From: Neoechinorhynchus agilis
Lineage: Eukaryota > Animalia > Acanthocephala
DNA length: 64,000 nucleotides
Reading direction: 5' to 3'
Assembly: GCA_051530055.1 (NCBI GenBank)
Contig: CM121342.1
Span: forward strand, 7,386,691-7,450,690
In this document: positions 2,826 through 61,650 of the stretch, piece by piece
How the letters are laid out: each line of letters begins with the position of its first letter
How positions within the stretch are numbered: the stretch's first letter is position 1
Translations under genes and position numbers: made by a program
The notes under the pieces: generated by a model
Told to the model about the DNA's origin: nothing
What the model saw: only the letters and a program-made list of their open reading frames with translations
The model's database searches: none

Positions 2826-2834
2826 CTAAATTAC

Positions 2835-10790: not shown

Positions 10791-10888
10791 TATTTTATGG
10801 TCCTCCCCGAGTATTTCTTTTTTTGAAACTGTCTTATTTACCTGTTGGGTTGATTTGTTCTTTTTCTTAGATTGCGTAAGCTGTTGAG

Positions 10889-12364: not shown

Positions 12365-13059
12365 GAAGACTGAGTTGGGAAAAATTATTGATTTTGAACG
12401 AATGTGGTCGCATGTTAAAGGTAACGATATTTATTCATTTCGTTGCTATTAGTTTATTATGACGTTGTCTATTATTTAAGTATCTTATCAAAATGAAAAA
12501 CCGAATTATTAGGCTCTTTTAGCTTTTTGTTCATCTTCAAAAATTGCGGTCAAAAAACCCAATTTGTAATTCTTAAACGAAACAGCCTTAGCGATTTAGA
12601 CAAGCCGTCATTAAATTTTAGTCTATCTTTTTCTTGTCCGGCTTGTTTTAGGCATGAAGCCAAACCAATTACATCAGAGAAGTGATATAACCAGTCTCTA
12701 AGGCACGGTTAAAAGTCTGTACATTCCTCCGGATTCTTTGATACCTCCCGAGGAGGCGGAACTCATAAGTGAGTTTCCTCCCTTCAACGAGATGTGTCGT
12801 CCCCTTTGGTTGTGCGTGATTGGCCGCAACGCATTCGAACCAGTTGACCCTTAACTACGGAATGAGCGCTTGGTTTATGATTAAAAAAAGCCGGGTATAA
12901 AGGGCAGACTAAAATTTAATGATGATATGAAACAAACCGGCTTGCCAGTAAAAAAACCTTAAAATGGTTTCGACAAGTTCGTACATTGCAACGCTCCCAT
13001 CCGAGATAAAAAATGACCGAGATTTAATGAAGTGCACGCAAAATTATAACAGCTTTGTT

Positions 13060-13235: not shown

Positions 13236-13244
13236 TTTATTTAT

Positions 13245-13345
13245 TATTTTGGTGATAGTATTCCCGGTAATAGCACATTTGATTTTGATTTATTGGAAAT
13301 ATTTCGCGAGGTGACCTCGCCTCACGAGTCATTGTTTGCAAGTGT
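13245..13345. mobile_element. Diverged solo arm of the fold-back element at 60080-60302
   Basis: TTTTGGTGA...ATTTGATTTTGATTT...ATATTTCGC..GAGGT.ACCTCGCCTCA..AGTCATTGTTTG aligns with 60080-60179. Confidence 0.75.
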
Positions 13346-14059
13346 TTACGACGTTAGACCGTGTAGATTCGATCTGATTCTAAAGCCGAATTGCACGAAG
13401 ATTGCAAGCGCTACGTTTAAAAATTAATCAAGGAATTTTACTTGATTTTTTATTTTTATAAAATTATTGCTAGGCTCACCGAAACTCTTTAAAAAAGTCC
13501 AATTTTTAAAATTTTTAAATTTTTCATCGTTTCAACAAGTAATCCACCTCGGACAAATTTTCTACAATTCTTGCTATCCGAATTATTACTAGGAATTTAT
13601 CTAGCATTCGTGGCTCATCCGAAACTGTTTGAAAAAATTCCATATTATTAGAATCTTAAAAATTTCCATCATTTAAACATTTGCTCCACTTCTCAAGCTT
13701 CCTGAATTAATACTAAGAATTTATCTATCTATCATTAATGGTATCTCTCGTTTGCGGTCGACCATTGGGTCCCGAATTTTGGCGAATGCCGCACCTAAAA
13801 AATTGTTTCTGTATTTCTTGAAATTGGAAGCTTGAGTACAACATCATTTCGTTTCGAAAAGTTGATTCCCACAAAGAATTGGTCAGTTTCTACTTTTTCA
13901 GTGATTCTTCAATCCTTTTAAAAAACTTTCTTCTATTCGGAAGATGGCTTTTTAAATACTCACGACATAAATCTTTTTAAAATTTAGAACCTACATTCAA
14001 CAATTTCAGAAGCTTTTTTCAAACCTTTATAAAGTCGCGATTTTTTTTCAATTAATTTA

Positions 14060-17000
14060 AAAAGCCTCCACCACCAACGACACCGATGCCGTCCCTTCGC
14101 TTCGCTCGGAACCTGGATGCTAGACGACAATATGAAGACGGAAACTTGCCCGCCCAAAATGAGCCAAGTGAAAAGACCGATTAAACGCCAAACGCTACCC
14201 AGACACCAGGCATAAATTATGTTCATTAAATCACTGACGCAGACACCTTGAACACGCAACTTATCGATCGCGCTCAACCTGAGAAGACCAACGCTGCCGG
14301 GCTCCCACGCGTCTCTACTGGTTTGTGTCCGGTTTGCGGTAAGTCTTTTAAATTAACCAATTTTTGAGTTTGGTTTGCTCATGGTCCCGGGGATCTCCGC
14401 TGTAGCGGGTCTTGTACTCCGCCACAATCAACCGATCTGCTTATGCCTGCGACCTCTCAGATCACCACTGACTCTATTTCGACAGCTGATATCGTGCGGT
14501 TTCTGCCCAGGAACGTCCTGAAACGGATCCCCAAAGGCGCGCGATATCTGGTCGCCAAAGCATTTACGGGATTGCTCAATGATTGCCTCCAAGAGAACCA
14601 CGGCTCTTCGCCTCCCCGCGCTTAGTCCTTTGCACTAGTGATGATTCTCGGGTGTCTTTCATATCAACAATCAAAGAAAGGGTGGCCTCCTTCGAACAGA
14701 TATTTAATAATTTCGAAATGAAATTTCGCGAGGTTCGTAAGGGACGCACGAAGGAAGGGTTTCGTTGCCATTTTTCGAACCGATCCCTGACTGAACGCGT
14801 CTCCGAAGCTTGCGGACGGAGATGTTCGGGGGACACCCGTTCAAATTTTAGAGTTAAAAAGGCCATCTCATCTTTTGCAAATGGTTCGGGTCATGGGCTT
14901 GACGGGTTAAGGCCTCAGCATCTAAAGGACGTGATGTAGCTCTCTTTAGAAAGTGCGCTTTCTCGGTTAGTCGACCGTCTGACTGGAGAGGATTTGAATC
15001 CCGCTGCAAAAGACCTATTTATCGGAGCATCATTATGTGCCCCCACAAAAAAACAAGGTGGGATTCGTCCCATCGCCGTATTTTCGACAAACCGGGCAGT
15101 CCACCTGGGCTGCTGCACATTCTGTGGGACGGAAGCTGTTGTCCACGCGCTCCGAAACTTTACTACGATGAGTTCAGAACCATGCGCGATTCTTAAGTGT
15201 AATTTTCAGAATGCCTTTAATTCTCTCAATAGAGAAACCATGTTCTGCGCAATTAGGGATCACGTACCAGAAGCTTTTCCTTATTTTCTCAACGCATACG
15301 GGACCCCGACTCCTTTGCTGTTCAACGATCACCTCATTTGGTCCGAAAGAGGAGTGCAGCAGGGAGACCTCGGTCCAATCGCTTTTTCCCTTGCAGTTAA
15401 TCCAATAGCGCATTCTCTCCAGTCCAGCTTTAACGCTTTGTACCTGGATGACGCTACGCTCGGAGGTGATCCCTCCGTAGTACTGCGCGATCTGGAGACA
15501 CGCGTAAAGGAGACGGCGAGGTTGGGCTTTGAGCTTAATGCAGGGAAATGTGAATTGTTGGTAATGAGCATCGAAAGTGAGTCATCGCAGAGCGAAATTT
15601 TCAAAGGTTTTAGAAATCTGGCACCCGGTATAGAATTGATCGCTCTTGACCGGCTGAGTCTTCTAGGGAGCTGCGTTTTTGATTCGAATGTGGAAAATGA
15701 AATCGACCATCTACTCCCGAACATCACGATACTGCGCGATAGAGTCCGGGAACTTTCGGCACACGAGGCTCTATCCCTGATCAAGGATACCCTCTTCATT
15801 TCGAAACTATTTTATAAGCTGCGTACGGCTTCCTTCTTCAAGCACGTCAATAAGTTAAAGAAACTCGATGACATTGTGAAGGCGTGTCTTGAGCACATTT
15901 TTAATATCCAGCTATCAGACGAGACCTAGCGACAACCTTCATTGTCTGTATCGTCCGGTGGCTTGGATATTCGAAAAACAGTAGATGTGTCGTTGTCCGC
16001 GTTTTTAGGATCATTCGAAGGGAGTCAAGATCTGGTAAAACGTATGTTGGGACCCATGTTCTGTTTAGCGGACGAATTTCAATTGGCGGTCCAGGAATGT
16101 TGGGAGAAGACGTATTACAACCAAGTTGCCGTAAGTGGCATAAAACAGCCCATCTTGGATAAACCTTTAGTCGCCCGAGCTCATAGTTCTCTAATTTCAG
16201 GCTCTCGCGGCGAGGTCGACCAGGCTAGAATGCTGACAGTCTCTATAAGAGAATCGGAAGCAGGGTTAGAAGCCCTACCCATTGCATCCGTGGGAACACT
16301 CCTCGTAGATGAAGCAGTTCGGATCGGAGTGTTCCTCAGATTAAATCTACCGATTTGTGTCGAACATCGTTGCCAGTGTGGAATGATCGTGGATCCACTG
16401 GGGAGACATGGTCTTGTTTGCAACAAATCAGGGGGTCGTTTCTCACGGCATGCTGAATTGAACGACGTAATTTCGCGTGTCCTAAATAACGACAAATTTA
16501 TCTATTTTAAGCCGATTAAAAAATATTTTTAACAATTCAAACAATCTGTTTGAAGCACACTCACCACCTCCCGCCGAATTCCAGCTTTTGTCCTTCCTCG
16601 ACCGTCGCCATCACGCTGACAGCACTGCCCCGTTGTACTGCTAGCGAGATATTTTGTCGAAGGAATACGCCTGCTCTTGGGTCTCCGGTCGTTTCTCTCA
16701 ATTTCTTCGAGAGATCCTGGAGAAGAGAGAGTGCCGAGCTGCCGAGCGCTCCATACGTCTCTACCCCAAAGGGGACAAAATAGTGAGCCCTCGATAAGTG
16801 AAGATATTTGCGTATTTTCCTCCCTTCCGCTGCACTGGCGGCACCACCGGCGATTTCGAGGGAGTAGGGGATGTTGCTGGCTACGAGGGTGTCCACACAC
16901 GTGGCGTCCCAGAGAAGGCATTTGCCCTCCCGCCACGGGAAGACCGACATTCCATCGGTTCTCAACGCCTGAGCAATTGCGTTATTGATTTCAGAATGGC

Positions 17001-17449: not shown

Positions 17450-17751
17450 TTGTTTAAACGTTTTGTTGCTTATGTGTTTAAATGAAAGAGTTTCTTTCAA
17501 AAGAAATCATCTCCTGAAAAAACCTCAACAGTCTTTTTAAATCAAAAAACGTTTTCTTAAACTCGTTTTATAGAAAACAATTTTCGGAAAAGGATTTTAA
17601 AAACATTTACATAAACGAAATGACCGTCCTGATCTCTTATTGCTCTAAGAAGACCAAAGTTTAGATCCTGCCTTAGATTCCTCGATAGCTGTAAAGCAAA
17701 ATATCACACAACTCCAAATCTTTCAAACCTTCATAGAATATTCTTATTGCG

Positions 17752-18651
17752 ATGATATTAAATTCTTCTACTCAGTTAACCTTAACAAACTGGGCGCTCA
17801 TTGCGATGTCAAAAACTTCGCCACTAAAAAGCAAAATAAGGCGCTGTTTCACGTCAAATGATGTTAACATTTTGTACAATGTTTTGAACGATATTTGCAA
17901 ACAAGTTCTGGAGAGCTCAATGAATCCTAATTTTGAATTGAAAGGAAAGAAGCCTGGAGAAATCAAGAAATTTCTAGAAACCCATTTTCAAATGAGCCTT
18001 CAAATAAATGAACCAATTGGACGTGTTATTTTATTTCTAATGTTTATTTCTTATGGACTTTCGACTCAAGAAGTAAACCCATTTTTTCTTGAAGTTTGCC
18101 AAAAGCTCAGCGAGGACGAGCAGGACTTTTTGGTTGGTCTCATCTCAATCCTGACGATGAATGATAATGATTATCGTGAAGTTTTACTCAGAGGTGCGAT
18201 TACAGATGCAACCAAAAGATCGGCGAGAAGTGAACACCGAAAGGTTGCGGATCTCCTTAACAAAATGAAAAATGAAGCTAAGAGCACAAATAATGTTAGG
18301 AATTTGTCGGAAAATGACCATGAATCGAATTATACGAAATCGGAAGATCATGCGGCGAAAGAAGATATCAAGAATGAACGAAATTCGAGTAACGTCATTG
18401 AATTCGAGAAACGGATGGCTTATTTAATTCAGGACAACAAACGCCTTAAAGATGAGCTCTCTATCAAGACAAAGTCTTGTTCGGATGCACTCATGAATTT
18501 AAAAAGTTTGATTGAACAAAACGAGCATTTAAAAGTGGAGCTGTCTTTGGAGAGACAAAAAGTGAAGGATATTGCAGAATCCAAGGAGTGTCTTCGATTA
18601 CAGCTTGAAGAAGTTACTGAAAAGTTATGTCAATTGGAAAAATTGGCCTAA
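17752..18651 (+). CDS. HOOK/girdin-like protein (calponin-homology-like N-terminus followed by coiled coil); may be partial
   Basis: 299-codon ORF; VILFLMFI...FLEVCQKLSEDEQDFLVGLI resembles the end of the HOOK CH domain; heptad-like C-terminus. Family call is by eye. Confidence 0.5.
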   Translation: MILNSSTQLTLTNWALIAMSKTSPLKSKIRRCFTSNDVNILYNVLNDICKQVLESSMNPNFELKGKKPGEIKKFLETHFQMSLQINEPIGRVILFLMFISYGLSTQEVNPFFLEVCQKLSEDEQDFLVGLISILTMNDNDYREVLLRGAITDATKRSARSEHRKVADLLNKMKNEAKSTNNVRNLSENDHESNYTKSEDHAAKEDIKNERNSSNVIEFEKRMAYLIQDNKRLKDELSIKTKSCSDALMNLKSLIEQNEHLKVELSLERQKVKDIAESKECLRLQLEEVTEKLCQLEKLA

Positions 18652-21600: not shown

Positions 21601-22982
21601 AAGCGCATCCATCCTACAAACTCCTGCTTTACATACTCAAAATTCAGGCATATAAAAAACGAGAGTGTAATTCCTTAGAATTTCCTGCGATCTACTAGAA
21701 CTTCGGAAAACAAATGGGTTTATTTGCGCTCGTTGTCCTTATCACAACTTGCTGGCTCACTTCATTGTGTCAATGGAACCACCCTGATAAAATCTACGTT
21801 AATACTCATCCACGGAGGCTTTTATTGCATCAAGAAGTTCCTAAACTTGAAACATACAAGCAAAGCAAAATATATATTGAACCAAGTTCAGTGGTAAGCA
21901 TGGACGAAAATACAGGTCAGTGTTCATTGTACTTTTTTTGGAGAAACCTTTTGGACTTTAGATCGCAGCTTCTATTACTATGATTACCCGGCACCATTTA
22001 AGTATTATAGCCGAAAAAGTAGAATACTCGCAAAGAAAGGAAGCTACTTAATTGGATAATAGTGTTCAAGTCAGTGTTCAAGGCATCTAAATTATATATC
22101 TCTTATTTGTTGTTAATGAGTTACACGTTTAATCCGGTCTTTACGTTGCAATTGAAAAAACGCATTGTAATTAAGCAATAATCAGAGAAGGTGCACCTTA
22201 GAATCGAATGCTCTTAAAACACTATCGAAAACCCAATTAATGCTAATTGTTATTCTGTTTTAAACATTTGGCACAAATAGTAGAATATTTAAGGTACAAT
22301 GAAAACTAATCGATTTAAACTTTGAAAATGCATATTCCGATGTCTAACAAAGAACCGTTCCTGAATTTAAAAAGAGTGTCTCAACAATAAGCTCCATCAA
22401 CCCATAATGATAACGATTTTGTTAGTTCGTCGATGTTGATGTAGGTGTCGCCGTGAGTAGAATTTGTAGACAGTGAGTTTCACCTCATAAGAAAATGATA
22501 TTAAATTTCCGAATACTTAGGAACGAAGAAACCCACACTACTTTCCGTACGTTCATCTTCAGTTTTTGTTTAATTTTCCATTATTCGTTGCGCATCAACG
22601 AAACCTATGCAACTTTAGGCATTTACACACTGAGTCAAATTTGGGGAAAGTATATTTTCCGTTGCGATTTCGCGATTTTAAGTAGAACATTTTGTTGTTA
22701 ATGAAAATAAGCATTCTTTACCTAATTTGCGAAAGTCTTGAAGCATCAGAGGAGATGGATGGAACGATGAAACCCACGAAACATCTTAAGTTTTGTGATT
22801 CATTGTTCCGAGAATATTTTTTCTTATCTTAGTGACGAGCGAATGGAAAATGATTAAAATTTTAAAAGTAAAAATGTTACTTTAAGCCGAACCTACTGAA
22901 AAACCCCGTCGTTTAATTGCCGCATTAAAAACACATAATTAAAAGTTTCTTTCTATCCAATTGCTCCTTCGAGTGTATGTGT

Positions 22983-23173
22983 ATTCTCAATGACGAATTG
23001 TTACACACTCGAGCTTTATTATTGAACTGTTCATTGCGAATTTTCAAGGCTTCAGCCTCCTTCTCAAGCATTGCTTGTATGTTTATTACAAACAAGGAGG
23101 CTGAGGCCTTGAAAATTCGCAATGAACAGTTCAATAATAAAGCTCGAGTGTGTAACAATTCGTCACTGAGAAT
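22983..23173. mobile_element. Fold-back (hairpin) element with 80-bp arms and a 31-nt loop
   Basis: 22983-23062 is the near-perfect reverse complement of 23094-23173; loop holds CATTGCTTGTA (23069) and TACAAACAA (23087). Confidence 0.93.
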
Positions 23174-23749
23174 TAAATGCTTTTTGGATTCAAAGATTAA
23201 CTGCGAGTAAATTCAAAAGTATCACCGTAAAAATCATATAAGATTATACGCTGAACACCGCAAACCCAAAAAGTATTCATAATGTGCGAATACACTGAAA
23301 ACAATACAAATTAGAGATTGATCAGATTTAAAAAGTCCACAATTATCCACGCCAAGAAAAACGCACTGAAAGCATACATTTTACGTAAATCCACGTGAAA
23401 TTCCAAAAGAGTTGAAATTATTCGGACCAATAAAAGGATCCTTAATCAAACATTTCTAGGATGTAAATAACAACACGTTTATTGTTAGAAAAATACAAAG
23501 AATAGGATCACCCATGTACCTTTGGGTCCTCATAAGCACCCGAGTTCATAATTGTTCAAAAAAGTGTCTCCGTTAATATGGAAATATGCAGTCGAGGGGT
23601 TTCCGTTCAGGAGGTAATATCTAGTCGGAGCGATGTCTATTCGGGTAGGAAATATCCGGTCGAAGACGGTTCCGTTCGGGTGGGCCCGTTCTGGTGGGAA
23701 TTGGTGTTTATTGTTTGCAGGAGCGCTCGTAAGGTTGGTCTTTCCTTTG

Positions 23750-25140
23750 CCACAAACCTAACTCGCGTCGACAGTTTTACATCATCGTTGTGGCACTCTG
23801 AGGTTAGTTTTCTTTAACATTCAGAGCACTTGTAAAATCATTCGTCTGACATTAGCCGATAAAAGTAATTCTGTCGAAAAACGATTCGAAGTTAAAAGTT
23901 TAAGAAAAAAGGTTTCGATTGTAAATTGACACTTTTTTTAGAGTGCTGCTTTTATGACAAAAAGAAAATCTTTATTTCTGAGCTTTCCCAATGTTACGGC
24001 TTCTTCAAAAATCTACAAATGTGCATGTGGAGATTTGAAGTGCGTGTTAAAGTAACGAAATTGAAGTGTGGAAGGTTTGTCCCGTTTGTTAAGCAGTTCT
24101 CGGACTTTGTCGAGCGGAGTTGTGTTTTTTGCCCTCGGTTTGGTCATGATTTCGGGGCCCGGATTCAGTGCTTTGAAAGAGTGTTTCGTCAGAAATGTTG
24201 ACGCCAAGGCTGTTAAATTTTTCTTTTCTGTAGATGAACTCGCGATTATCGTCGGCCAAACATCGTTCACAGGTCACCTCGTTGACAACGCTGCTTCGTA
24301 TGCTAATCGAATCTTGGCGACCGTTTGTGTCCACGGGCATCCATGGTGCGTACACATCAATGAACGACGCTGAACCTTTTTCCGGCGTTTCACGACGTTC
24401 AGTTCTCGTCAGGATTCGCCTAAGCGTATGATGCTATTCTGTGCAAAATCCGGAAACCCATTCTCGATCGTCCGAGCAGCTTACAATAACCATTTAAGTG
24501 TCAATTTACAATCGAAACCTTTTTTCTTAAACTTTTAACTTCGAATCGTTTTTCGACAGAATTACTTTTATCGGCTAATGTCAGACGAATGATTTTACAA
24601 GTGCTCTGAATGTTAAAGAAAACTAACCTCAGAGTGCCACAACGATTATGTAAAACTGTCGACGCGAGTTAGGTTTGTGGTGAAGGATTCGGTTGTACTA
24701 TCGCCGGGGCACTACTTATATTCCGGGCGGTTGGAAGGTGAAGATATGGCTTTTCCGTAGACAATGCAAACGAGAGTTTTAGACATCAGCTCGACAAACT
24801 CCGAGAACTGCTTAACAAACGGGACGAACCTTCCACACTTCAATTTCGTTACTTTAACACGCACTTCAAATCTCCACATGCGCATTTGTAGATTTTTGAA
24901 GAAGCCGTAACATTGGGAAAGCTCAGAAATAAAGATTTTCTTTTTGTCATAAAAGCAGCACTCTAAAAAAAGTGTCAATTTACAATCGAAACCTTTTTTC
25001 TTAAACTTTTAACTTCGAATCGTTTTTCGGATACGGTTATATTCTTAACCTGACCGTAATTCTTTGTTAAGTAAATCAGGATTACTTTTATCGGCTAATG
25101 TCAGACGAATGATTTTACAAGTGCTCTGAATGTTAAAGAA
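23750..25140. mobile_element. Large inverted-repeat element (arms of about 365 bp plus an extra internal arm copy) with a decayed internal ORF, possibly Mutator/foldback type
   Basis: 23750-24115 is inverted at 24789-25140; 23750-23932 is also inverted at 24497-24680; minus-strand MCTHHGCPW at 24331-24357. The inverted repeats are certain; the superfamily call is weak. Confidence 0.6.
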
Positions 25141-25574: not shown

Positions 25575-28458
25575 ATGTCCTATAATCCTCATGTTTACCA
25601 CCAACACCATGGTTCTCGCGGTTATCAACAACAACAACAATCTAACTATGGACGTTCGAATGTCGCTAGTTCAAACGAAGGGAATATTAGGCTTCCACAA
25701 AGCCTAGAACGTATTTTAGCCAATATGGACCGTCGTGTGGACGAGATAGGACTTCGACGCGAAGAGATCGATGACCACATTCTTGGAAAACCACTAAAGT
25801 CCGAGGTTGTTAAAGTTACGGAGAACCCTTCAGCTTCTATCGTTATACGTTTGAAAACCTCAATTCGAAATCGAAAACGTAAAGTTCAGAAAAAGAAGGC
25901 TAAAATTAGACGACGGTTACAAGCTGCTCGTACCGCTTTCGAATCCAAAAATGAATCCAAAGTTGATCAAAAGGAAGAAAATGAAGAAGTACCGGACAAT
26001 GTGATAATTGAATATATTCCTGAAGACTTACCTGTCGATCGAAATGATCCTTTCTTTTCATATTTTAGAAGTGTAGCACAACATTTTCGACCTTCTCATT
26101 CGTCCGGAAAACACAATCTTAATCTCGCTTCTAAATATGGAAACATTAAGGGGTTCGGTGTCGGAATGAAAATCCGCGATAGGACATTGCTTGAAGACGA
26201 AGATGATCAGCCAAAGGGAGAAGAAGAGAAAGGGACGTCGAAGAAACAAATGAAGAAAATGACAAGACTCAGTGTACCGACAATTAAAAGTTTATCTCCT
26301 TTTTTGAAGCATAATTTTTCCAAGATTTGAAAAACCAACAGGAATTTTTACTCTTTGCAACCCCATTTTTCAAATGAATTGATTTTTTTCCCTTTAAGCA
26401 TAACAATTAACACTCTTAAATGTTAAAATAATATTTCTGGATTTTATTAGAATATTTCGTTTTACATTGTGAAATTCTCGATTTGGGAAACCAAGAGGAC
26501 CCGATTTTTCAAATGAATTGATTTTTTTCCCTCTAAGCATAACAATTAACACTCTTAAATGTTAAAATGTTATTTCTGGATTTTATTAGAATATTTCGTT
26601 TTACATTGTGAAATTCTCGATTTGGGAAACCAAGAGGACCCGATTTTTCAAATAAATTTAATTTTTTCCCTTTAAGCATAACAATTAACACTCTTAAATG
26701 TTAAAATGTTATTTCTGGATTTTATTAGAATATTTCGTTTTACATTGTGAAATTCTCGATTTGGGAAACCAAGAGGACCCGATTTTTCAAATGAATTGAT
26801 TTTTTTCCCTTTAAGCATAACAATTAACACTCTTAAATGTTAAAATGCTATTTCTGGATTTTATTAGAATATTTCGTTTTGCATTGTGAAATTCTCGATT
26901 TGGGAAACCAAGAGGACCCGATTTTTCAAATAAATTTAATTTTTTCCCTTTAAGCATAACAATTAACACTCTACATTGTTAAATTTTTGATTTGTGAAAT
27001 CAATTTTTATCAATTTTAATACCCCAATTTTAAATTGTTTAGAATTTCAATTTTTTGACAAAAGGATTTTTTCAGATTGAACTTTTTTTAGGTGTTTTTT
27101 TTAAGAAAACCTATATCTTTTCCAATTTGTTTCTCCAATCCAGAAACGAGTAGCTCATTACACTAAATGGTTAAAATAAATTTCTGCAATAAACTTTTTA
27201 TTTGATAGCAGAATTAAAGCAACTAGTACAAAGACCGGATGTGGTGGAGATGCATGATGTCACCGCACGGGATCCAAAGCTTTTGGTTCATCTAAAATCT
27301 CTTCGAAACACGGTACCGGTTCCTCGGCATTGGTGTGGTAAGCGCAAATATCTCCAAGGCAAACGTGGATTTGTGAAACCTCCTTTCGACCTTCCTGACT
27401 TCATTAAACGGACCGGAATAATGGAGATGCGCCAAAGTATCCAAGACAAAGACGATCATAAAAGTCTGAAACAAAAAATGCGAGAAAGGATGCGTCCTAA
27501 ACTTGGTCGGATAGAGATTGACTACCAAAAGTTGCACGATGCATTCTTCAAGTACCAAACTAAACCTCAATTAACCATGCACGGTGATCTGTACTATGAA
27601 GGAAAAGAAAACGAATTGAAGTTGGCACAAGCTAAACCTGGTATTCTAAGTGATGATTTAAGGATCGCATTAGGGATGCCGGCGGGTACATTAGCCGAGC
27701 GTATTCCACCTCCTTGGTTGATTGCAATGCAACGATATGGACCTCCTCCTTCTTATCCGAATTTAAAAATTCCCGGTCTAAATTCACCGATCCCAGCCGG
27801 ATGTTCATTTGGATATCATCCTGGTGGTTGGGGAAAACCTCCAGTCGATGAGATGGGGCGTCCTTTGTACGGTGATGTGTTTGGGACATTAGCGGCACAG
27901 ACTGTGCAAGACATGATGATAATAGAAGTTGACGAGAACGTTGATAAGAGTTTATGGGGTGAATTAGAGGTCGAAGAAGATGAAGGAGTTGATGAAGACG
28001 AAGAAGATGCAGAGGAAGAGTTTGAAATGCCTTCTCCGGACGATCCAGTGGAGTCTGGAATAGAGAGTCCAATAACATCGAGTACAGTTGGTGGAATGGA
28101 GACTCCTGCGAATGTTCAGTTAAGAAAACGAGCGCTTCCAGAAGAGACTGGACCTTTGTATCATGTGATTCCAGAAAAGGCTTCATCAGTTGGAAATGCT
28201 CTTATGGGTTCATCTAAGATCTATGACGTGAACGTTGCCTTGTCAAACAAACAAGGGGCCGTGGATATGAGTATCCAACCAGAAGATTTGGACGACCTTG
28301 ACGTCGCTAATTTGGAGCAGCGATATCAGGAACAAGTGCAAAGTATTGAAAAGAAAGACATCGTTGAGTCAGTTGGTGAGTCTAGTCGGAAAAAGAAAAA
28401 GAAGCACGCGACAACGAGCACCAGTGTGACACGAAAAGATAGAGATTTTAAGTTTTAA
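25575..28458 (+). CDS. SF3B2: Splicing factor 3B subunit 2 (SAP145); exon 1 25575-about 26273, exon 2 about 27205-28458
   Basis: AELKQLVQRPDVVEMHDVTARDPKLLVHLK..RNTVPVPRHW (DUF382), PSP domain (PPPWLIAMQRYGPPPSYPNLKIPGLN), C-terminal KDRDFKF. Exact junction ambiguous. Confidence 0.96.
26365..26972. repeat. 139-bp tandem repeat x about 4.4 inside the SF3B2 intron
   Basis: TTTTCAAAT marker at 26371, 26510, 26649, 26788 and 26927. Confidence 0.95.
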
Positions 28459-28514
28459 ATCGTCGTTTTTCTGGCTAAAAAAAGATTCAATTTTTATTTT
28501 ACTCCATTTTTTAG

Positions 28515-29015
28515 ATGTCATCGGGAGCATTGAAACGCTTAATGGCAGAATACCGTCAACTGATGACGGATGCACCTGAAGGAATAATAGCTGGGCCAAA
28601 AGACGAAGACAATTATTTTGAATGGGAAGCAGTGATCACAGGACCTAAGGATACGCCATTTGAAGATGGAGTGTTCTTTGCAAGTCTTAAATTCCCAGAA
28701 GATTATCCATTAAATCCACCAACGATGACTTTTCTCACAAAAGTGTTTCATCCGAATGTGTACCCCGATGGACGAGTATGCATCTCTATTCTTCATGCCC
28801 CAGGGAGTGATCCAACCGGATATGAAACTATGGCTGAACGATGGAGTCCCGTTCAAAGCGTTGAAAAGATCCTGTTGTCTGTCATGTCCATGCTCGCTGA
28901 ACCGAATGACATGAGTCCCGCTAATATCGATGCTGCCAAAATGTGGAGGGAGAACAGGGATGAGTTTAATAAAGTGGCCAGGAAAAGCGCAATGGATTCA
29001 TTGGGAATCGCTTAG
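28515..29015 (+). CDS. UBE2G2: Ubiquitin-conjugating enzyme E2 G2 (Ubc7), single exon
   Basis: ALKRLMAEY...[45 protein letters not shown] with the Ubc7/G2 acidic loop insertion. Confidence 0.97.
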
Positions 29016-41134: not shown

Positions 41135-41212
41135 AATTAAAAGTCCTATCCAATTTTCTCAATGGCGAATTGTTACACACTCGAACTTTATTATTGAACT
41201 GTTTATTGCGAT
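41135..41212. mobile_element. Solo left arm of the 22983-23173 fold-back family
   Basis: AATTAAAAGT..CTATCCAATT..TTCTCAATG.CGAATTGTTACACACTCGA.CTTTATTATTGAACTGTT shared with 22937-23040. Confidence 0.8.
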
Positions 41213-41339
41213 TGATTCTCATATTCGATCATATAGATGTTGGCCATCGCTGGTCCTAACGGTGATCCCATTGCCACTCCGTTCGTCTGGTCGTAGAATT
41301 TTCCTTCTAATAAGAACGCAGACTTCGTCGTGCAATGAT

Positions 41340-41600
41340 CAATCAGTAATCGCCAATAACAACATTTCTTTGAACTTTTCTCTCACTTGAGAGGTCGTTC
41401 TTTTCAGCATTGTCGGTTTTCGTCTTTGTTCTCCTTTCCCAGCGTCTTGAAATCTCCGTTCACACTGTCCTTCCACCTCTTTTTGGGCATCCCTCTTCTT
41501 TTCCCTCGAGCTCGATTCTCCATGCGAGGCGTCTTCATCTGCTTGTGTGACCTGAGGGTACCATCGCAATCCTGGTCATTTATTTTTTTCACGAAACTGG
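41340..41600 (-). mobile_element. 3' remnant of an RTE-clade LINE
   Basis: Minus strand encodes ARGKRRGMPKKRWKDSVNGDFKTLG. Confidence 0.6.
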
Positions 41601-47337: not shown

Positions 47338-47435
47338 AACAATGCTTAAGAAGGAGGCTGAAACCTTGGAAATTCGCAATGAACAGTTCAATAATAAAGT
47401 TTGAGTGTGTAACATTTCGCCGGAACAATTGGATG
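47338..47435. mobile_element. Solo right arm of the 22983-23173 fold-back family
   Basis: AACAATGCTTAAGAAGGAGGCTGA..CCTTG.AAATTCGCAATGAACAGTTCAATAATAAAG...AATTGGAT. Confidence 0.8.
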
Positions 47436-49062: not shown

Positions 49063-52000
49063 TTATTCAATAACATGATATTGCTGGTCATTCACGTTTT
49101 CTCCATTTTGTTGATGAGCCGCTGAATTTCCTTGTTGTTGTTGCGGCGGAGGCGGATGTTGCGGTGGAGCATTTGTTGTACGTGGAGTGCTCCTGGGCTG
49201 TACAAGACCAACGAGGTTTTGGGTTGGCATACAGAATGGAAAGTTAGAAGTGGGAGCCCGTTGACTAGTGCTCACTACATTGAGTAAATGATGGCTCATG
49301 TTTGTGATTGAATTAAAGACGGCTGGTAATCTGGGTAACTCACTGAGCATATTATCCAACGACTTATTGATGAGATTCACGGTTCTCTGAATGATAGCCG
49401 AGCCTTTTGATGGTTGATCTGAGAAAGTCCCTAAGAATACGTTAAGGGCGGCTTTCGAAAGAGCGACAGCCTGATTAACATGACCAACGAGGGGACGAGG
49501 AACATTTAGACCAATCATTTCCATTCGACTTGACAGCATATTTGGATCTTGTTGAAAGCGTTGAAGTGTATCTTCAGCCAGCAATGCAGATTCAAGCAAT
49601 TTAAATCTCTTAGCCATAAATCTATGCTTTTGTTCAGCCGAGTATGCACGTTGGCCGTCGCCGCTAGTGCTCGAATCATTGGCGTTCACGGTTGGCTGAA
49701 CGCTAGTTTCATCCGCCAAACGGCCCATTCCTTCATTAAGAATTGCGAATCTCACGTCGCTTAGAATCTCAGGCCACCGAGCGTATCCATATACACTCAC
49801 TCCAGCTAATAACCAATAGTCGTGAATGTACGACCAGTTCGCTCGTTGTTGATAGGCAATCGCTTCCAGTCGATTATTGGAGTCGGACGTACACCTAACT
49901 CGGTCGGAAATGAGTTGTTGTTCTATGATCCACAATTGCTGAAGCTCAGTGTATCCGCCTTCATTGATATTGAATAAACAGTGAATAACAGGCGCTGGTG
50001 GATCTGATGAGGACGCTTCGTGGTTTTGTTGCAGCCGAGAAAGGTATCGCGCTCTTGCTGCGTTTAAATCTTCATTGTCACGTGGTGCCATCTCAGGCAT
50101 GCTCCACAATCCGTTACAAGTTTCATACTCTTGTACTTTTCGTCTTATCTTCCCCATAATTCCAATCCGATTTAAAACGAGTTGCCGATTAAGTCCTTCA
50201 CGTGGAACTCCGTCCGAGTAGAATTCTCCTTGTGGATCGGTTTCAGTCAAATGCCGCAAAAACAGTCCACAATAGGCCATGACGTCTTGTTCCGTCTTCT
50301 GCCTTAAATCGCGGACCATCCATTGAGAATTAAAGCCCGGTGGAGACTGACCCATTCCGTATCTCATAATAGCGTTAAAAAACGCTCTTCGCTGCCGTCC
50401 ATTGAATCCAAGAACTTCATATGAACCACCGCCCAAATCACGGACAAGCTGAGTCTGTGGTGTAAACGCAGGCGCAGCAACAGAGTTTCGCTGTCTACGG
50501 CGTCGTCCACCTCCAACCAGAGTTCCGGTATCCGTACCAGCATCGAAATCATCGTCTTCTCCATCATTTGACCCTGCATAAGTACTCAAGTTAACTTCAC
50601 TGCCTACTTCCGACAAAACTGGCTCATCATCATTTCCAGTCGAAGCGTAATTCACCACTCGGCGACTCCGTTTTCCCTTTCCCAAATTCTTAGACTGTTC
50701 TTCTACTAACTCTTTGTGCCTATTACCCAGCAGACGCTCCCAATATCCACCAGTCTCAACCGGAACATTAACTACCTCTTCCTCAACTATAGCCTCTTGT
50801 TCTTTCATTAAATAACTCGCTACTTTAAACGAGCTCAAATACTCATTAAGGCCACACTCTTTTTCTTCGATTCCACGCTGTGATCTATCTAGAAGCGAAT
50901 CTATAGCCGAATCATCATAGTGAATATGTCCTTCTTCTTGTTGCTGTTGCTCTTCTTCACCGGGCTTAAACAGATTCTCGGTCCCAAATCGTAAAATATC
51001 CTCCAATTCCTTTTTACTCATATTTTGACCGCCTTTACCAACTCCAGGGCGAACTACCAAATGCGTCAACATCATTTTCTTTTTAGCAACCTGACAAATA
51101 CGCTCTTCAACGGTCTCACGAGTCACGAATCGATAAATCATCACCTTGTTTTGTTGTCCGATTCTGTGTGCCCTAGAAAATGCTTGGATATCGTTGTGTG
51201 GATTCCAATCCGAATCGTAAATCACGACAGTATCTGCAGTTGCGAGATTTATCCCCAATCCACCCGATCGAGTGGACAAAATAAACACAAATTGTTCGGC
51301 GTTCGGAGCATTAAATCGATCAATCGCGTCCTGACGCTCTTGTCCAGTGATTTTTCCGTCAATTCGCTCATATTTGTATCCCATGTAGTCGAAAAAGTCT
51401 TCGAGAATGTCCATCATACGAGTCATTTGGGAAAATATTAGAACTCTATGACCTTGTTCTTTTAATTTTGGCAGCATTTTCGCAAGAAGTTCGAGCTTTC
51501 CACTTGCTTTTATTAACATACTTCCTTCGTATTGACCAGCCGTGTTTACAGGAGCTTCTTCAGCCGCAGCGACTAACAAATACGGATGATTGCAGCACTT
51601 TTTGAGTTCCATAACAATATTTAATAATGACGATTGTCCACCGCCTCCTCGGGCGCACAAGACCTCGTAGTTTTTGTGGATTATATACTGGTAGTATTTC
51701 TTTTGCAGAACCGAAGGTTCGATTCGAACAATGAATTCGCTTTTTGAAGGCATATTTTTTAGCACATCAGCTTTGAGACGGCGAAGAAGATGAGGACCGA
51801 GCATTTCGTGAAGTTTCTTCACCTGGTCGTCTTTGCTGAGATCCGAAAACTCTTCAAGGAATCCAGGAAGGTCGTTAAAGTTCTCAGGACTCAAAAAATT
51901 CAGGAGATGATAGAGCTCCTCGAGATTATTTTGCAATGGAGTTCCAGTAAGAAGTACCTTTCGTTTGATTGTGAAATCAGTTAGTGTTTTAAAGAACCTA

Positions 52001-54309
52001 GATTGATTATTCTTCAATCGATGGGCTTCATCAACCACGAGAACTTCCCAATCAACTGATCCAAGACATGAATGGTCGAGTGAAACAAGTTCATATGAAG
52101 TCAACAGTACTTGAAATTTGACATGAGCACCACTGCGGACTCGATAGGCACGAGGACCTGCTCTTATAGCGTCTTCGTCAATACAGAATTCATGTTTGCG
52201 AATCATGGCTCGACTTGCACGATCTCCAATATAGGACACGATGTATAAATCAGGTGCCCAAAGTTCAAATTCACGCTCCCAGTTAATAAGAGTGGACAAG
52301 GGAGCACAAACCAGGAAAGGACCTTTACATAAATCCTCTTTGAAGAGCGAATAAAGAAATGAGATTGATTGAACAGTCTTTCCAAGTCCCATTTCATCGG
52401 CTAAAACGACGTCCGTACCTTGTCCCCAACTAAACCTCAGCCAATTAAGACCTTCCAATTGATACTCATGAAGGCTACCACCAGTTTCGTCAATATAATC
52501 AGGTTGTTCTTCGTATTTCCTGCAAGGATTAGGGCGAATCACTTGTGGTTGAATTGTTTCTCGTGCAGCTTTTCTTCTCCTTGCTTTATTATCGTCGATC
52601 ATTCGAGCGCGATTTGACCAATACTGTTCTATATGACGTTGCCAATCAGGAATTTCGTCTGAATAATCTCCTTCCTCGGGCTCATAGGTAGCCTGAGCAT
52701 ATCCAAGATCACGCCATTTTACGAGGAAAAACAAATGTCCTCTTTCTTTTTTGTGGTTTATAATTCGATGAACGGTGAGCCATTCCATTCGAATTCCTTG
52801 TTTGAAATACCGCTGGACCAAATCGGGATTGCCACCGACGATTCCAGATGATTCGTCGTCGTCTTCGTAAGTTGTAACGGGTGGATAGGTTTTGTCTTTT
52901 CCGAGTTTTTTCCAATAACACCTCCACAAAACCGTCTGGTGAGTTTCAATCATAAGTTCAGGAAGCCATTCACAATGCCAATGAGATAGTCCATCGTATT
53001 TGACATACATCTCTCGTATTTCAATCATATTTGGTTCTTTTCGGCGACTAGCTTCAACTACATATGGATACTCATCATCGGAACAAACGGGTCTCCATCG
53101 CCAACCGAGCACTCCAGAGACAGGAACTTTAGGAGCTGGAATCTGACAAACTGGACAAAACCATTGACCTTCAGGAATTTCCGTTACTTTTGGAACAACG
53201 CAATCCATGTGATATGAATTGACACATTGATCGCAACAAAGCACCTCTCCTTCCTTTTTACAAACACGGCAATAGCTGTTGTGGTTATCTTCCACAATAT
53301 CCTCTTTTTCGGGTTTACTTAATGCGGTCATCTTCGTTTTGTTTCCGTCTCGTTCACAAATAGGACAAAACCAATCTCCTTCTGGGAAAGAGGTTGCAGT
53401 TGGATCCACACAAATTAAATGAAAAGCACGCGGACATCCATCACAGAGCATTATCTCACCGCCTTGACCACAATGCTCACAAATTTCTTGATGATCCATC
53501 ATAATTTCCTTCTCATCCTCCATATATTCATCGTCATCTTCATTTCTCTTAGGTTTATTTAACCTTTGAGGAGTCGAACGGGGAACTTTTGCCTTCTTTG
53601 CAGACGAAACCTTTTTCTTCTTTACCAAAGATGGCTCATCCATTGAAGCTAGAAGAGCATCGTTCATTGAAGCATCATCTTCGTCTGCTATTCCTCCACT
53701 GGCGGCATACACACCACCGGATTGAGCGGCAGCTCGGCGTTTAGGTGCCGTACGACGGGACCTACGAAGTGGTTCTTGTACGGCGCTCGGAACGGCTGAC
53801 TTGGGACTACTTTCGTCGTAATGAACAGTCCGACGTCGAGATCGCCTTGATCTTTTAGCCTTAGATTTACCTTTACCTTTCTTTTCTTCACTGGACGAAT
53901 CGAGATTTTCGGTTGGAACAGGACTTGGAGCTGCTGGCCGTTTGATGGATTGATGAGGACTGGAAGGTGGACGATGAAGTAGTGGTGGAGATAGGGGTTC
54001 ACCAGCCAATACTTTGGTTCGATCAGCACTGAATTCTCGCCACTTGGCCGACAAAATGTTCATGACTTTAGACGTAGCCAACAGTGGACATTTTGCGGAT
54101 ATAAGAGGACGTGTGTGCTGGAGGAAGGCCCGGTAGTGGGCAAGGTTTTCGTAGTCCTCTTGTGAGAAGTTTAAATCGATGATGCCTGTTATTCCATATT
54201 CAGCGCATAGTTCAGCCGAGGATTTTTGTTGAGTTGTGGGAGGATTTGACTGAGGATCCACCATTGCTGGTCGTGTTGGAGCGACAGATTCCTCGCCGTC
54301 TGATGACAT
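49063..54309 (-). CDS. CHD4: Mi-2 / CHD3-4-5 chromodomain-helicase (NuRD ATPase), 1748 aa, single exon
   Basis: CHDNT domain (KWREFS), two PHD fingers, two chromodomains, SNF2 ATPase (LADEMGLGKT, VDEAH, DWNPHNDIQAFSRAHRIGQ), DUF1087/DUF1086-like and CHDCT2 (HDYWLLAGV..YGYARW) regions. The symbol denotes the Mi-2 subfamily, not a resolved paralog. Confidence 0.96.
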   Translation of the reverse strand: MSSDGEESVAPTRPAMVDPQSNPPTTQQKSSAELCAEYGITGIIDLNFSQEDYENLAHYRAFLQHTRPLISAKCPLLATSKVMNILSAKWREFSADRTKVLAGEPLSPPLLHRPPSSPHQSIKRPAAPSPVPTENLDSSSEEKKGKGKSKAKRSRRSRRRTVHYDESSPKSAVPSAVQEPLRRSRRTAPKRRAAAQSGGVYAASGGIADEDDASMNDALLASMDEPSLVKKKKVSSAKKAKVPRSTPQRLNKPKRNEDDDEYMEDEKEIMMDHQEICEHCGQGGEIMLCDGCPRAFHLICVDPTATSFPEGDWFCPICERDGNKTKMTALSKPEKEDIVEDNHNSYCRVCKKEGEVLCCDQCVNSYHMDCVVPKVTEIPEGQWFCPVCQIPAPKVPVSGVLGWRWRPVCSDDEYPYVVEASRRKEPNMIEIREMYVKYDGLSHWHCEWLPELMIETHQTVLWRCYWKKLGKDKTYPPVTTYEDDDESSGIVGGNPDLVQRYFKQGIRMEWLTVHRIINHKKERGHLFFLVKWRDLGYAQATYEPEEGDYSDEIPDWQRHIEQYWSNRARMIDDNKARRRKAARETIQPQVIRPNPCRKYEEQPDYIDETGGSLHEYQLEGLNWLRFSWGQGTDVVLADEMGLGKTVQSISFLYSLFKEDLCKGPFLVCAPLSTLINWEREFELWAPDLYIVSYIGDRASRAMIRKHEFCIDEDAIRAGPRAYRVRSGAHVKFQVLLTSYELVSLDHSCLGSVDWEVLVVDEAHRLKNNQSRFFKTLTDFTIKRKVLLTGTPLQNNLEELYHLLNFLSPENFNDLPGFLEEFSDLSKDDQVKKLHEMLGPHLLRRLKADVLKNMPSKSEFIVRIEPSVLQKKYYQYIIHKNYEVLCARGGGGQSSLLNIVMELKKCCNHPYLLVAAAEEAPVNTAGQYEGSMLIKASGKLELLAKMLPKLKEQGHRVLIFSQMTRMMDILEDFFDYMGYKYERIDGKITGQERQDAIDRFNAPNAEQFVFILSTRSGGLGINLATADTVVIYDSDWNPHNDIQAFSRAHRIGQQNKVMIYRFVTRETVEERICQVAKKKMMLTHLVVRPGVGKGGQNMSKKELEDILRFGTENLFKPGEEEQQQQEEGHIHYDDSAIDSLLDRSQRGIEEKECGLNEYLSSFKVASYLMKEQEAIVEEEVVNVPVETGGYWERLLGNRHKELVEEQSKNLGKGKRSRRVVNYASTGNDDEPVLSEVGSEVNLSTYAGSNDGEDDDFDAGTDTGTLVGGGRRRRQRNSVAAPAFTPQTQLVRDLGGGSYEVLGFNGRQRRAFFNAIMRYGMGQSPPGFNSQWMVRDLRQKTEQDVMAYCGLFLRHLTETDPQGEFYSDGVPREGLNRQLVLNRIGIMGKIRRKVQEYETCNGLWSMPEMAPRDNEDLNAARARYLSRLQQNHEASSSDPPAPVIHCLFNINEGGYTELQQLWIIEQQLISDRVRCTSDSNNRLEAIAYQQRANWSYIHDYWLLAGVSVYGYARWPEILSDVRFAILNEGMGRLADETSVQPTVNANDSSTSGDGQRAYSAEQKHRFMAKRFKLLESALLAEDTLQRFQQDPNMLSSRMEMIGLNVPRPLVGHVNQAVALSKAALNVFLGTFSDQPSKGSAIIQRTVNLINKSLDNMLSELPRLPAVFNSITNMSHHLLNVVSTSQRAPTSNFPFCMPTQNLVGLVQPRSTPRTTNAPPQHPPPPQQQQGNSAAHQQNGENVNDQQYHVIE

Positions 54310-59029: not shown

Positions 59030-59230
59030 ACATCATAGAGAATTGTCGTTGAAGTGAATTTGATTCGAGTTTGGCGATGTTTTTCCCCCGAGCTTAAATT
59101 GTAGAAAACTTACAAACATTATAACTGAAGAGGTAAGCAAAAAGTTTACGAAATATTTTAAAATAAGTGATCAACACTATCAAAAATCCGAGGGAAAAAC
59201 ATCGCCAAAGTCGAATTAAGACGATAATTC
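59030..59230. mobile_element. Fold-back element with outer arms of about 45 bp enclosing one inner arm and the core motif
   Basis: TTCGAGTTTGGCGATGTTTTTCCCCCG (about 59064-59090) is inverted at 59188-59215; GTAGAAAACTTACAAACATT at 59101; related to 60900-61130. Confidence 0.75.
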
Positions 59231-59269
59231 GTTATCATTGAAATAATCGCCTTTAAAACTTACAAAAAT

Positions 59270-60050
59270 GATTTTTAATTGGGTTGCATTTAAGGCCTCA
59301 ATAAAGCGTCTCGTGAAAGTTTATTCAATGAGTTTCGATCTAATTTGTACAAACTTTAAGCTTTAAACATTTGAAAATGTGTTCAAGTACTCAGATGAAT
59401 TAGTCAGGAAATAAGCCATCGTCTTTTTAAAGAAGTATCGCAAAAGCAGTTGCAATCTCTCTCTCATAACATCCGGAACGATATGACCCAAGGGAATTAA
59501 TACGTAACAATGAAGTTAGCATCAGACCTTTGGAATGTCTTTAAAGGACAAAATCGATAGTTGTCTAATATCGCAATAAAGCAAAATCGATACCTGGTGT
59601 TCTTAGATGGTTTTCCATGAGTCTCGATTATGTCAAAGGCAAAGATAGGAAAACAATATTCTTTGAACCGAAAAGGTTTGTTTTGCTCATAACCATTATT
59701 TGGAAGAGATGACTGAGGAAGCCGAATTACTGCTATTTTATTCTCATCTAATTAATCCGTTCGCGTGGCGCAGAAGTTCCTTATATGAAAAATAAGCTCA
59801 CTTCTCTTCTAAATAATCCATGTCGCATTCTAACCATTTGGATCAATAGTCAATAAAATTCGATTGTGAATGAATGTAAAAATAATTGAAGGTTTCTAAT
59901 CGAACTCGTCTCTATATCCAACATTTGGCAGCTATAAACAATTACGTTATCTGTTGTTGATAATAAAAAAAAGTCTAAAATGTTTAGCTTAAGTTGTTAA
60001 TGGATACCAAAGACGAAACATTATTGAATTTTTATTAGCAATAGAAAATG
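59270..60050 (-). pseudogene. Heavily decayed non-LTR RT remnant
   Basis: Collinear traces on the minus strand: xGF near 59720, AFD near 59640, a QG..SP..F-like stretch near 59410 and GLKCNP.K near 59290; many stops. Confidence 0.35.
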
Positions 60051-60079
60051 GCGTCTTATTTATAATATTATTCGACTAA

Positions 60080-60302
60080 AATTTTGGTGAAAATAATCCG
60101 CCGGTCATAACCTATATTTGATTTTGATTTGAGATATTTCGCAGAGGAGGTAACCTCGCCTCATCAGTCATTGTTTGTACACAACTCACATAATTAAAAA
60201 CTTAGAAGCAATGACTGATGAGGCGAGGTTACCTCCTCTGCGAAATATCTAAAATCAAAATCAAATATAGGTTATGACCGGCGGATTATTTTCACCAAAA
60301 TT
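60080..60302. mobile_element. Fold-back element with 94-bp arms (one mismatch) and a 35-nt loop
   Basis: 60080-60173 is the reverse complement of 60209-60302; CATTGTTTGTA at 60169 and AAAACTTAGAAGCAATG at 60197. Confidence 0.95.
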
Positions 60303-60813
60303 ATAAACTTTGACTAACCCGAAGGATTTTCTCCAGCGATGATTTGTTGGATTATTTCTAAACCGAATGCTTTCAAAAAAAGACTTTGAATCAAGCGGTT
60401 TTTATTTCGGAATATTATGGGCTCTAACGACGAATTTTCTCAAATGGTTTAGACAATATCTGATAGATCGCTACAAGCTTAAAGGTTGACATGGGAAAGT
60501 TGGCTGAAGAAACCAAGTAAACGATGAAGACAAAAATACTCAAGACAAGCTGTTAGGAGACGTCACTTATGCATAAGACTGGTTTCGAGACTATCTCGAG
60601 AAGCATTGGATTCGTAACTTATGATGGTAGTTTCCGCAATTGTAGGAGGTAACCGTGACCTAACCAAAAGATAGCGAATTTCATTTTCGGTTTTTATGTG
60701 CTTTTATTTGGACGATCAACTTGTGGCTCTCTTTTTTCCACTTTAAGTCGTAGTTGAACGATTTAACACTTTAAAAAACCTTTGATTTTGTCCAAATTTT
60801 ATGAAACTTTCTT

Positions 60814-61650
60814 AGTTTTGCCACTACTCGGATTCAAAAATTCACTAATCTATATTCTCCCCCCTTGAGGTTTGTCATTCCTTTTATCAAATAATTGATT
60901 TATATCATAGAGAATTGTCGTCGGCGTGAATTCGATTCGAGTTTGGCGATGTTTTTCCCCGGATTTTTGATAGTGTTGATCATTTATTTTAAAATATTTC
61001 GTAAACATTTTGCTTACCTCTTCAGTTATATTGTTTGTAAGTTTCCAACATCAGTTGAAAAAACTTACAAACAATATTACTGAGGAAGTAAACAAAAAGC
61101 TTACAAAATATTTTAAAATAAGTGATCCACATCAACAATAATTGATTTATTTTTGATAATTTTCGGCCTTCGTTTAGGCCTTTTTCATTAGTCTATTGTT
61201 TTCGATGAAAGATTCGAGTAAGCTTTCAAGTAAGCTACTGAGATTTAGAAATCTTATAGATTAGTAATTAAAGACAAATCAATAAATTCTCGAGAATCTG
61301 TAAAACTTTACCTATTTTTTCTTCACAAAAGGTTTTACGCTGGGAATTAAGTTTTGGAGGACCATTCAGAAAAAAGGTAGTGTTCATTACGGATAAGACT
61401 GTCCAAAGCAGCAGTAGGAGGACGAAATGCATTTCGATGCTAATGAACGATAAGTTTAACGGAAAAACCGAAATTCCCTAAGTATTTTGTTTTAATTTAC
61501 AAGAGCAATAGGCTGACAACGAAGGCCTTTGCGAAATCCGAAAATTATCAAAAATAAATCAATTATAATTCGCTATAAAAAAATGAGAAAATGTCGGAAT
61601 TACCCGAGAGAGGTATTAGTGAATTTTTGAATCCGAGAGGTGGCAAAACT
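60814..61650. mobile_element. Composite of nested fold-back elements
   Basis: Outer 36-bp inverted repeat 60814-60849 / 61615-61650 (related to the 247-bp satellite); inside, palindrome 60978-61044 / 61060-61127 and the MITE-like element 61138-61583. Confidence 0.8.

Follow-up and report, generated by a model that had tools for sequence, protein, structure and literature searches.

Genes and mobile elements in the window

The DNA analysed here, 64,000 nt of AT-rich animal DNA from Neoechinorhynchus agilis (hereafter the window), contains protein-coding genes, decayed retroelements and a series of fold-back structures. At 27202-29015, an SF3B2-like gene that ends at 28458 is followed on the same strand, 56 nt away, by a single-exon UBE2G2 gene starting at 28515, the start codon of which is fused to a strong acceptor (ttttttag|ATG). 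The operon-like layout of these two genes suggests that trans-splicing exists in N. agilis. A chromatin remodeller of the CHD3/4/Mi-2 type is encoded on the minus strand (49063-54309) in one uninterrupted frame of 1748 aa, which is unusually intron-free, and a dyskerin gene is also located within the window. A decayed LINE-like retroelement, in which a reverse transcriptase (RT) with a YLDD motif is followed by a CCHC-type motif, occupies 14583-16532 on the plus strand and is also found at 10001-12435 of a second N. agilis locus, L002 (22 kb), which was reached via its LINE-like RT and brings the N. agilis DNA surveyed to ~86 kb. Elsewhere in the genome there is one related annotated protein, ACOME3_009991.

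A conserved leader at the centre of the fold-back structures

The initial annotation of this DNA had drawn attention to hairpins with seemingly unrelated arms that share a motif at their centre, and all of the motif sites that it quoted are present in the window. The sequence CATTGYTTSTA has 11 exact matches in the 64,000 nt compared with 0.22 expected from shuffled sequences (shuffle maximum, 1), contrary to the possibility that the motif occurs at a chance frequency, and in each of the 11 cases a fold-back arm has the motif at its inner end. When up to four mismatches are permitted, the 18-mer AAAACTTACAAGCAATGA has 17 sites in the window, with 14 of these at inner arm ends. The inverted repeats are real, as at 60077-60179/60203-60305 (103 nt, 96%), 22983-23062/23094-23173 (80 nt, 98%) and 60963-61044/61061-61142 (82 nt, 84%). 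A motif-like site at 21849 lies outside any hairpin, has no ribozyme beside it and was left as a probable chance match.

The hairpin motif is part of a leader of ~22-25 nt and is thus longer than first described. The 5′ end of the leader occurs in two variants, which begin with TTGTAGAAAACTT and CAGTTGAAAAAACTT, respectively, and three positions within it vary recurrently, ACTT[A/G][C/G]AA[G/A]CAAT. Between the leader and the ribozyme box that follows it (see below) there are 0-7 nt. In asymmetric hairpins the full arm begins at the leader every time, with unrelated filler before it, which argues that the leader marks the 5′ end of a full-length template.

Arm families and their configurations

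Head-to-head inverted copies are present at seven loci in the window and at two in L002, and the arms fall into families that we designate A to F. The L002 hairpin at 17714-17856, the arms of which are 100% identical, and the window hairpin at 60077-60311 look young. The family A hairpin at 60077-60311 consists of two full arms. Its left arm (60077-60179, minus strand) carries a truncated leader, the reverse complement of 60168-60179, followed by a minimal hammerhead core at 60132-60167 (CTGATGA-G-GCGAGG..CCTC(T)GC-GAAATATC) and then the 3′ part. The right arm (60193-60311, plus strand) comprises a leader at 60193-60214, a hammerhead core at 60215-60250 and a 3′ part that extends through 60302, after which a one-sided 9-nt tail, ATAAACTTT, at 60303-60311 resembles the beginning of another leader. 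The hexamer GACTAA occurs at both 60074-60079 and 60312-60317 and is a candidate 6-bp target-site duplication of this hairpin. Target-site duplications, which the initial annotation had proposed as a check, are thus represented by this single candidate, since none was found for the other hairpins. On another chromosome, at L002 6862-7038, family A pairs a full with a truncated arm and includes an intact core at 6914-6945. In the window it also occurs as a solo arm at 13242-13350 on the minus strand, which has a leader at 13329-13350 and a core at 13297-13328 with a broken box (CTCGTGA) and a perfect helix II. The solo arm lies head to head with, and just upstream of, the decayed LINE-like retroelement at 14583-16532.

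Family B is represented by a full/full hairpin at 60906-61142 and by a truncated/full pair with a tail at 59032-59271. The long arm of the former (60906-61049, minus strand) has its leader at 61028-61049, a hammerhead core at 60992-61025 (CTGAAGA-G-GTAAGC/GTTTAC-GAAATATT) and a 3′ part reaching as far as 60906, and is opposed on the plus strand by an arm at 61056-61142 with a leader at 61056-61077, a decayed core at 61080-61113 and a 3′ part that the family F arm curtails. In the second pair, a 5′-truncated inverted copy that consists of the 3′ part alone (59032-59102, minus strand) lies head to head with a full-length copy at 59101-59271 on the plus strand, in which a leader (59101-59122) and an intact core (59125-59158) precede a 3′ part extending to ~59240. 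This copy ends in a one-sided tail of 31 nt (59241-59271), missing from the other family B ends, which is closed by a second, direct copy of the leader at 59255-59271 (AAAACTTACAAAAATGA; score 13, reached in none of 300 shuffles).

Family C comprises a hairpin together with a solo arm and a fragment of the 3′ part. The leader arm of the hairpin (22975-23089, minus strand) has a leader at 23068-23089 and a core of the U3-A8 variant at 23037-23067 (TTGAGAA-G-GAGGCT/AGCCTT-GAAAATTC), and the opposite arm (23091-23173, plus strand) has a partial leader, TTACAAACAA, and has lost its box through a 10-nt deletion. The solo arm at 47338-47425 on the plus strand begins at AACAATGC, with ccatttttaa upstream. 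Both solo arms had been reported to carry the motif at their inner end: this holds for the family A arm at 13242-13350, whereas the arm at 47338 retains only these final 8 nt of the motif and nothing of the leader before them. The 3′ fragment (41148-41211, minus strand, ~64 nt) starts 2 nt ahead of where the ribozyme is predicted to cut and runs directly into an RT-like fragment at 41206-41382 (..GVAMGSPLGPAMANIYM..) of 59 aa, the RVT_1 match of which (E 0.022) is under the Pfam threshold. The 41148-41382 fusion looks like a template switch off the end of a cleaved RNA.

Family D forms a satellite on the plus strand at 2828-4578, in which each unit comprises a 5′-truncated inverted arm, the leader and a decayed U3-A8 core (TTGATAA-T-GTCGGA/TCCGAC-aggt-GAAATATT), so that a whole hairpin and its flank make up the repeat unit. 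The motif-bearing array described in the initial annotation is real, and its period measures 246 bp (7.1 units) rather than 247 bp. A separate family D copy on the minus strand (2690-2851) adjoins the array, with a leader at 2767-2788 and a decayed core at 2724-2760. Family F is an old pair at 61138-61566, the arms of which (61138-61198 and 61506-61566) are 82% identical, are separated by 307 nt and have decayed cores; CAATAG begins both arms, and a leader-like sequence, TTTACAAGAG, precedes the right arm only.

The arms have the architecture of minimal hammerhead ribozymes

The arms were originally regarded as unrelated. While blastn indeed finds no alignment between families, a minimal hammerhead core is common to all of them directly 3′ of the motif. 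Reading outwards from the motif, every family shows the same succession of a box (CUGANGA or the U3-A8 form of it), a single unpaired base, a helix II of 6 bp, GAAA and a palindromic AUAU or AAUU. The box is of the C3-G8 type (CUGANGA) in families A and B and of the U3-A8 type (UUGANAA) in families C, D and E. A strict descriptor (YUGANRA with 3-8 covariation, one unpaired nucleotide, a stem of 5-7 bp and GAAA) gave five matches in the window compared with 0.32 in shuffles. Each of the five lies directly 3′ of the motif and is followed by a palindromic tetranucleotide (GAA-AUAU or GAA-AAUU). When up to 4 nt of spacer were allowed, the descriptor recovered the seven satellite units as well. Helix II differs between families yet is paired in each (GCGAGG/CCUCGC, GUAAGC/GUUUAC, GAGGCU/AGCCUU and GUCGGA/UCCGAC, to which Pomphorhynchus laevis adds GAUAGC/GCUAUC), with two-sided compensatory changes at positions 2-6. 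The extra G or U and a helix II of 5-7 bp are present in all families, and the closing pair of helix II is G-C in families A, B, D and E and G-U in family C. Because helix II fell out of register when the cores were aligned with MAFFT, the pair counts were taken directly from the descriptor matches and cores. In several family A copies, GAAAUAUUUC forms a 10-nt palindrome.

Helix I, paired by hand, has 3 bp in the family A copy in L002 and in family E, 3+3 bp in family B and 5/6 bp in family C, and is lacking in the 60193 copy and in family D; the last bases of the leader (AUGA and similar) would supply its 5′ strand. Several copies have mutated boxes (CTCGTGA, CTGAGGA..AAAA and TTAAGAA), and given the many mutated boxes and the short helix I (~3 bp), most of the hammerhead copies are probably inactive. 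Four truncated arms start either at helix II itself or no more than 2-6 nt from the predicted cut site, which hints that cleaved RNAs may also have been used as templates.

The minimal hammerheads of Penelope-like elements (PLEs) are marked by an extra base between positions 9 and 10.1, a G10.1-C11.1 pair, a long helix II, a short helix I, palindromic positions 15.2-16.2, a U3-A8 variant and opposite-strand pairs 100-700 bp apart (Cervera & De la Pena 2014, PMC4209133). The N. agilis arms resemble them in the CUGANGA/GAAA core and its U3-A8 variant, a single unpaired base ahead of a helix II of 6 bp that opens with G-C, a very short predicted helix I in most copies, the palindrome that replaces helix III, the many solo and opposite-strand copies and a high variability with compensatory changes. 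They differ from the published examples in that most copies look broken, in that the ribozyme is here predicted from sequence and in the near-invariant leader of ~22 nt that stands ahead of it in each of the five or six families; no comparable shared block upstream of the ribozyme was found in the publications consulted. With the arms, the known minimal hammerheads gain examples from Acanthocephala, among them the U3-A8 variant and a helix II with clear covariation. A further site resembling a minimal hammerhead stands alone at L002 13700-13760 (CTGAAGC-G-GTCTGC/GCAGAC-GAAAATTC); it lacks the leader and is preceded by the acceptor-like sequence tatactattctag.

Rfam hammerhead models require helix III. 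In a scan of the whole window at E values up to 10, no hammerhead model matched any arm, as expected because the arms are helix-III-less variants, and the matches obtained were limited to generic miRNA-hairpin and snoRNA-like models, all sub-threshold. In favour of genes for hairpin RNAs of the miRNA type there is a match to MIR837 with 52.5 bits at 60991-61114, accompanied by weaker matches to other miRNA models. All of these are far under the gathering scores (52.5 vs 117) and of a generic long-hairpin kind, and the matches to plant miRNA models reflect no more than the length and regularity of the hairpins. Moreover, single arms fold no better than shuffles (z -0.04 to -1.66), and the conserved part is on the loop side and not in the arm that would hold a mature miRNA. 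The motif includes AACAATG, and its resemblance to Sox/HMG and Forkhead sites had led to the suggestion of a possible protein-binding role; since every copy of the motif lies inside a repeat copy, this role is unsupported. We consider it extremely improbable that the structures are hairpin RNA genes or protein-binding sites kept by the host.

Probable insertion of PLE-type retroelement copies in head-to-head pairs

MITEs conserve their outer termini and vary inside. The initial annotation correctly recognised the reverse pattern in these hairpins, the centre of which is conserved and the outer ends of which are variable, and it was also right to regard the elements as non-autonomous. A MITE or foldback DNA transposon, or a new type of element with a central nicking or recombining site, would account for the palindromic form, and MITEs and Foldback elements likewise take the form of long hairpins, nearly perfect and scattered through AT-rich DNA. 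However, the outer ends here are family-specific, with neither conserved terminal repeats nor a fixed target duplication, and solo and truncated arms are common. A single family can take solo, asymmetric and symmetric forms (as in families A, B and C above), which argues that each structure was built afresh and was not moved as a unit. The arms are polar, ribozyme-bearing retro-copies with one-sided tails. We therefore regard an origin from MITEs, foldback transposons or a central recombination site as very improbable. The notion that the central site turns adjacent DNA into an inverted duplication fails because the arms are ribozyme-bearing retroelement copies arranged 5′ to 5′, and that of an undescribed element system fails because the head-to-head layout is a known PLE insertion architecture. 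The alternative that all arms might be diverged copies of one ordinary MITE was correct in that a single architecture is shared, but this architecture is that of a retroelement. Elsewhere in the window, at 23743-24687, terminal inverted repeats of 192 bp (98%) surround 561 bp; because it has neither leader nor hammerhead, this is probably an element of the DNA-transposon type.

We hold with considerable confidence that the arms are short PLE-type retroelement copies, placed 5′ to 5′ by twin-primed insertion, and that the motif is their leader. The unit would be a non-coding retroelement of ~105-200 nt in which a leader of ~22 nt is followed by a minimal hammerhead and a family-specific 3′ part. 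New copies would arise through target-primed reverse transcription, in which, in PLEs, both nicked target strands can prime, and two cDNAs that converge and join at their 5′ ends would generate a head-to-head inverted repeat. If both cDNAs were full length, the RNA 5′ leader would come to lie at the hairpin centre and the element 3′ ends outside, whereas one short cDNA would leave an asymmetric hairpin or a solo arm. The combination of a conserved centre with family-specific outer ends would then be expected because RNA 5′ leaders meet centrally and element 3′ ends lie on the outside. The arms have a defined orientation and a hammerhead architecture, full and truncated arms are mixed and the tails are one-sided; we infer twin priming as the mechanism and the 5′ edge of the leader as the RNA 5′ end.

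Insertions of PLEs are known to include, beside the main copy, an inverted copy with a truncated 5′ end, and also partial tandems and a tail of 30-40 bp on one side (PMC8557442, PMC3846280). In purified form, a PLE protein nicks both strands of the target, extends them and begins reverse transcription at two internal sites (PMC11167929). The N. agilis loci show the same insertion architecture in their head-to-head arms, a partial tandem, one-sided 3′ extensions of 9 and 31 nt, AT-rich flanks and two apparent RT start sites. The 31-nt family B tail and the 9-nt family A tail, the latter inside the candidate GACTAA duplication, look like PLE tails. Hairpin asymmetry, arms that stand alone, 3′ tails on one side only and the candidate 6-bp target duplication all fit retro-insertion and not a MITE or a central recombination site.

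In contrast to PLE insertions described previously, the units here are only 105-200 nt long, have no reading frame between them and are not accompanied by an autonomous PLE in the window. The initial annotation had proposed a search for autonomous partners next to the motif: no PLE reading frame (RT plus GIY-YIG) and no GIY-YIG sequence was found in the window, and its two clear reverse transcriptases look LINE-type. The sole link to a reverse transcriptase is the family C 3′ end that is fused to the sub-threshold RT-like fragment.

Retrozymes are defined by direct tandem repeats, circular RNAs and canonical type I hammerheads (PMC7229834; bioRxiv 10.64898/2026.07.22.740005). Like animal non-LTR retrozymes, the N. 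agilis elements are short, non-coding, hammerhead-bearing units that are likely to be PLE-dependent and that occasionally occur in tandem (the 246-bp satellite and the family B unit with a further leader behind it). Unlike retrozymes, they are mostly dispersed as inverted pairs with ribozymes that lack helix III.

The candidate for a new class of fold-back element is thereby removed, as the hairpins follow from the insertion mode of PLEs. As PLE-type twin insertions they have a known architecture, and the conservation of the leader across families is the point that remains mildly interesting. Taken together, the full-length arms, the arm starts adjacent to the cut site and the tails that read into the leader provide a genomic readout of template ends, which bears on the role of the hammerhead in PLEs and on where PLE reverse transcription starts and stops.

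Origin of the leader

The leader could be either a cis handle for the mobilising enzyme or a promoter, or a captured spliced leader. Evidence on its place in the template comes from the arm 3′ flanks, which read into leader sequence clearly in one of the 17 arms (59255-59271) and marginally in one more (60303-60311; p 0.05 for the match of the tail to the leader). Since both tails read into the leader, the leader also follows the unit in the template, and the template appears from these tails to be head to tail (pseudo-LTR-like, tandem or circular). Our leading guess is that the leader is an intrinsic cis element, representing the transcript start and/or an A/C-rich RT start region of a head-to-tail template. 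In the anole PLE, an A/C-rich RT start region is located downstream of the ribozyme, and the N. agilis leader occupies the same place.

Acanthocephalans are close relatives of bdelloids, and the leader might instead be an unreported, bdelloid-related spliced leader (SL) of Acanthocephala that was trans-spliced onto the ribozyme RNAs at an acceptor immediately 5′ of helix I before reverse transcription carried it into the genome. Such a scenario would be a refinement of the twin-insertion model and not a departure from it. The leader has the size of an SL and is near-identical across families whose bodies cannot be aligned. Its variants are common to several families and not tied to any one of them (mean distance 2.43 within families vs 3.11 between, p 0.11), and the leaders of the family A and family E copies in L002 are identical. 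Between the two arms of the hairpin at 60077-60305, two recurrently variable leader sites differ, against just two differences in the ~95 nt outside them, and two arms begin exactly at CAAT without any leader. The bdelloid rotifer SL, which is 23 nt long (GGCTTATTACAACTTACCAAGAG; PMC3795323 Table 1), is similar in length and shares an AACTTAC(C)AAG core with the leader, although this core match extends to only 10 of 11 bases with one gap (p ~0.03). In Penelope of Drosophila virilis, the 5′ end of helix I coincides with a mapped intron acceptor, and the operon-like SF3B2-UBE2G2 pair, with its acceptor-fused start codon, would likewise accord with trans-splicing in this species. Trans-splicing of bdelloid telomeric PLEs, for which the literature searched gave no confirmation, was left out of the argument.

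Several observations speak against capture of an SL. The presence of leader sequence in the 3′ tails at 59255-59271 and 60303-60311 suggests that it is part of the repeating unit, and the likeness to the bdelloid SL is weak, with a p value of 0.25 for the second leader variant. Within the 86 kb of N. agilis DNA there was neither an SL RNA gene (leader exon, GU donor and Sm site) nor a GT donor behind any copy of the leader, although a sample of this size is much too small to rule out such a gene. Protein searches and exact look-ups with dyskerin, UBE2G2, CHD4 and further reading frames of the window matched the genome assembly alone and no transcript contigs. A minimal hammerhead pair from Pomphorhynchus laevis is arranged head to head and joined by a 19-nt palindrome (27226-27310 of the 29-kb locus L003; CTGATGA-T-GATAGC/GCTATC-GAAATATA), and this one twin hammerhead lacks a leader of the N. 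agilis type. None of 165 matches to the bdelloid SL in metagenomes precedes a ribozyme; 163 of them are SL RNA genes, which our test for such genes thus readily recognised, and the other two resemble mRNA 5′ ends at contig ends. On balance we consider SL capture unlikely and favour the leader as an intrinsic element. If the leader were nevertheless an SL, the hairpin centres would record the acanthocephalan leader and its variants, and retroelement RNAs would pass through the trans-splicing machinery before being copied.

In the metagenome contigs, the bdelloid SL RNA genes, in which the leader is followed by GTAAATGATC..., very often form pairs that diverge head to head across a constant spacer of ~136 nt, and some contigs contain several such pairs.
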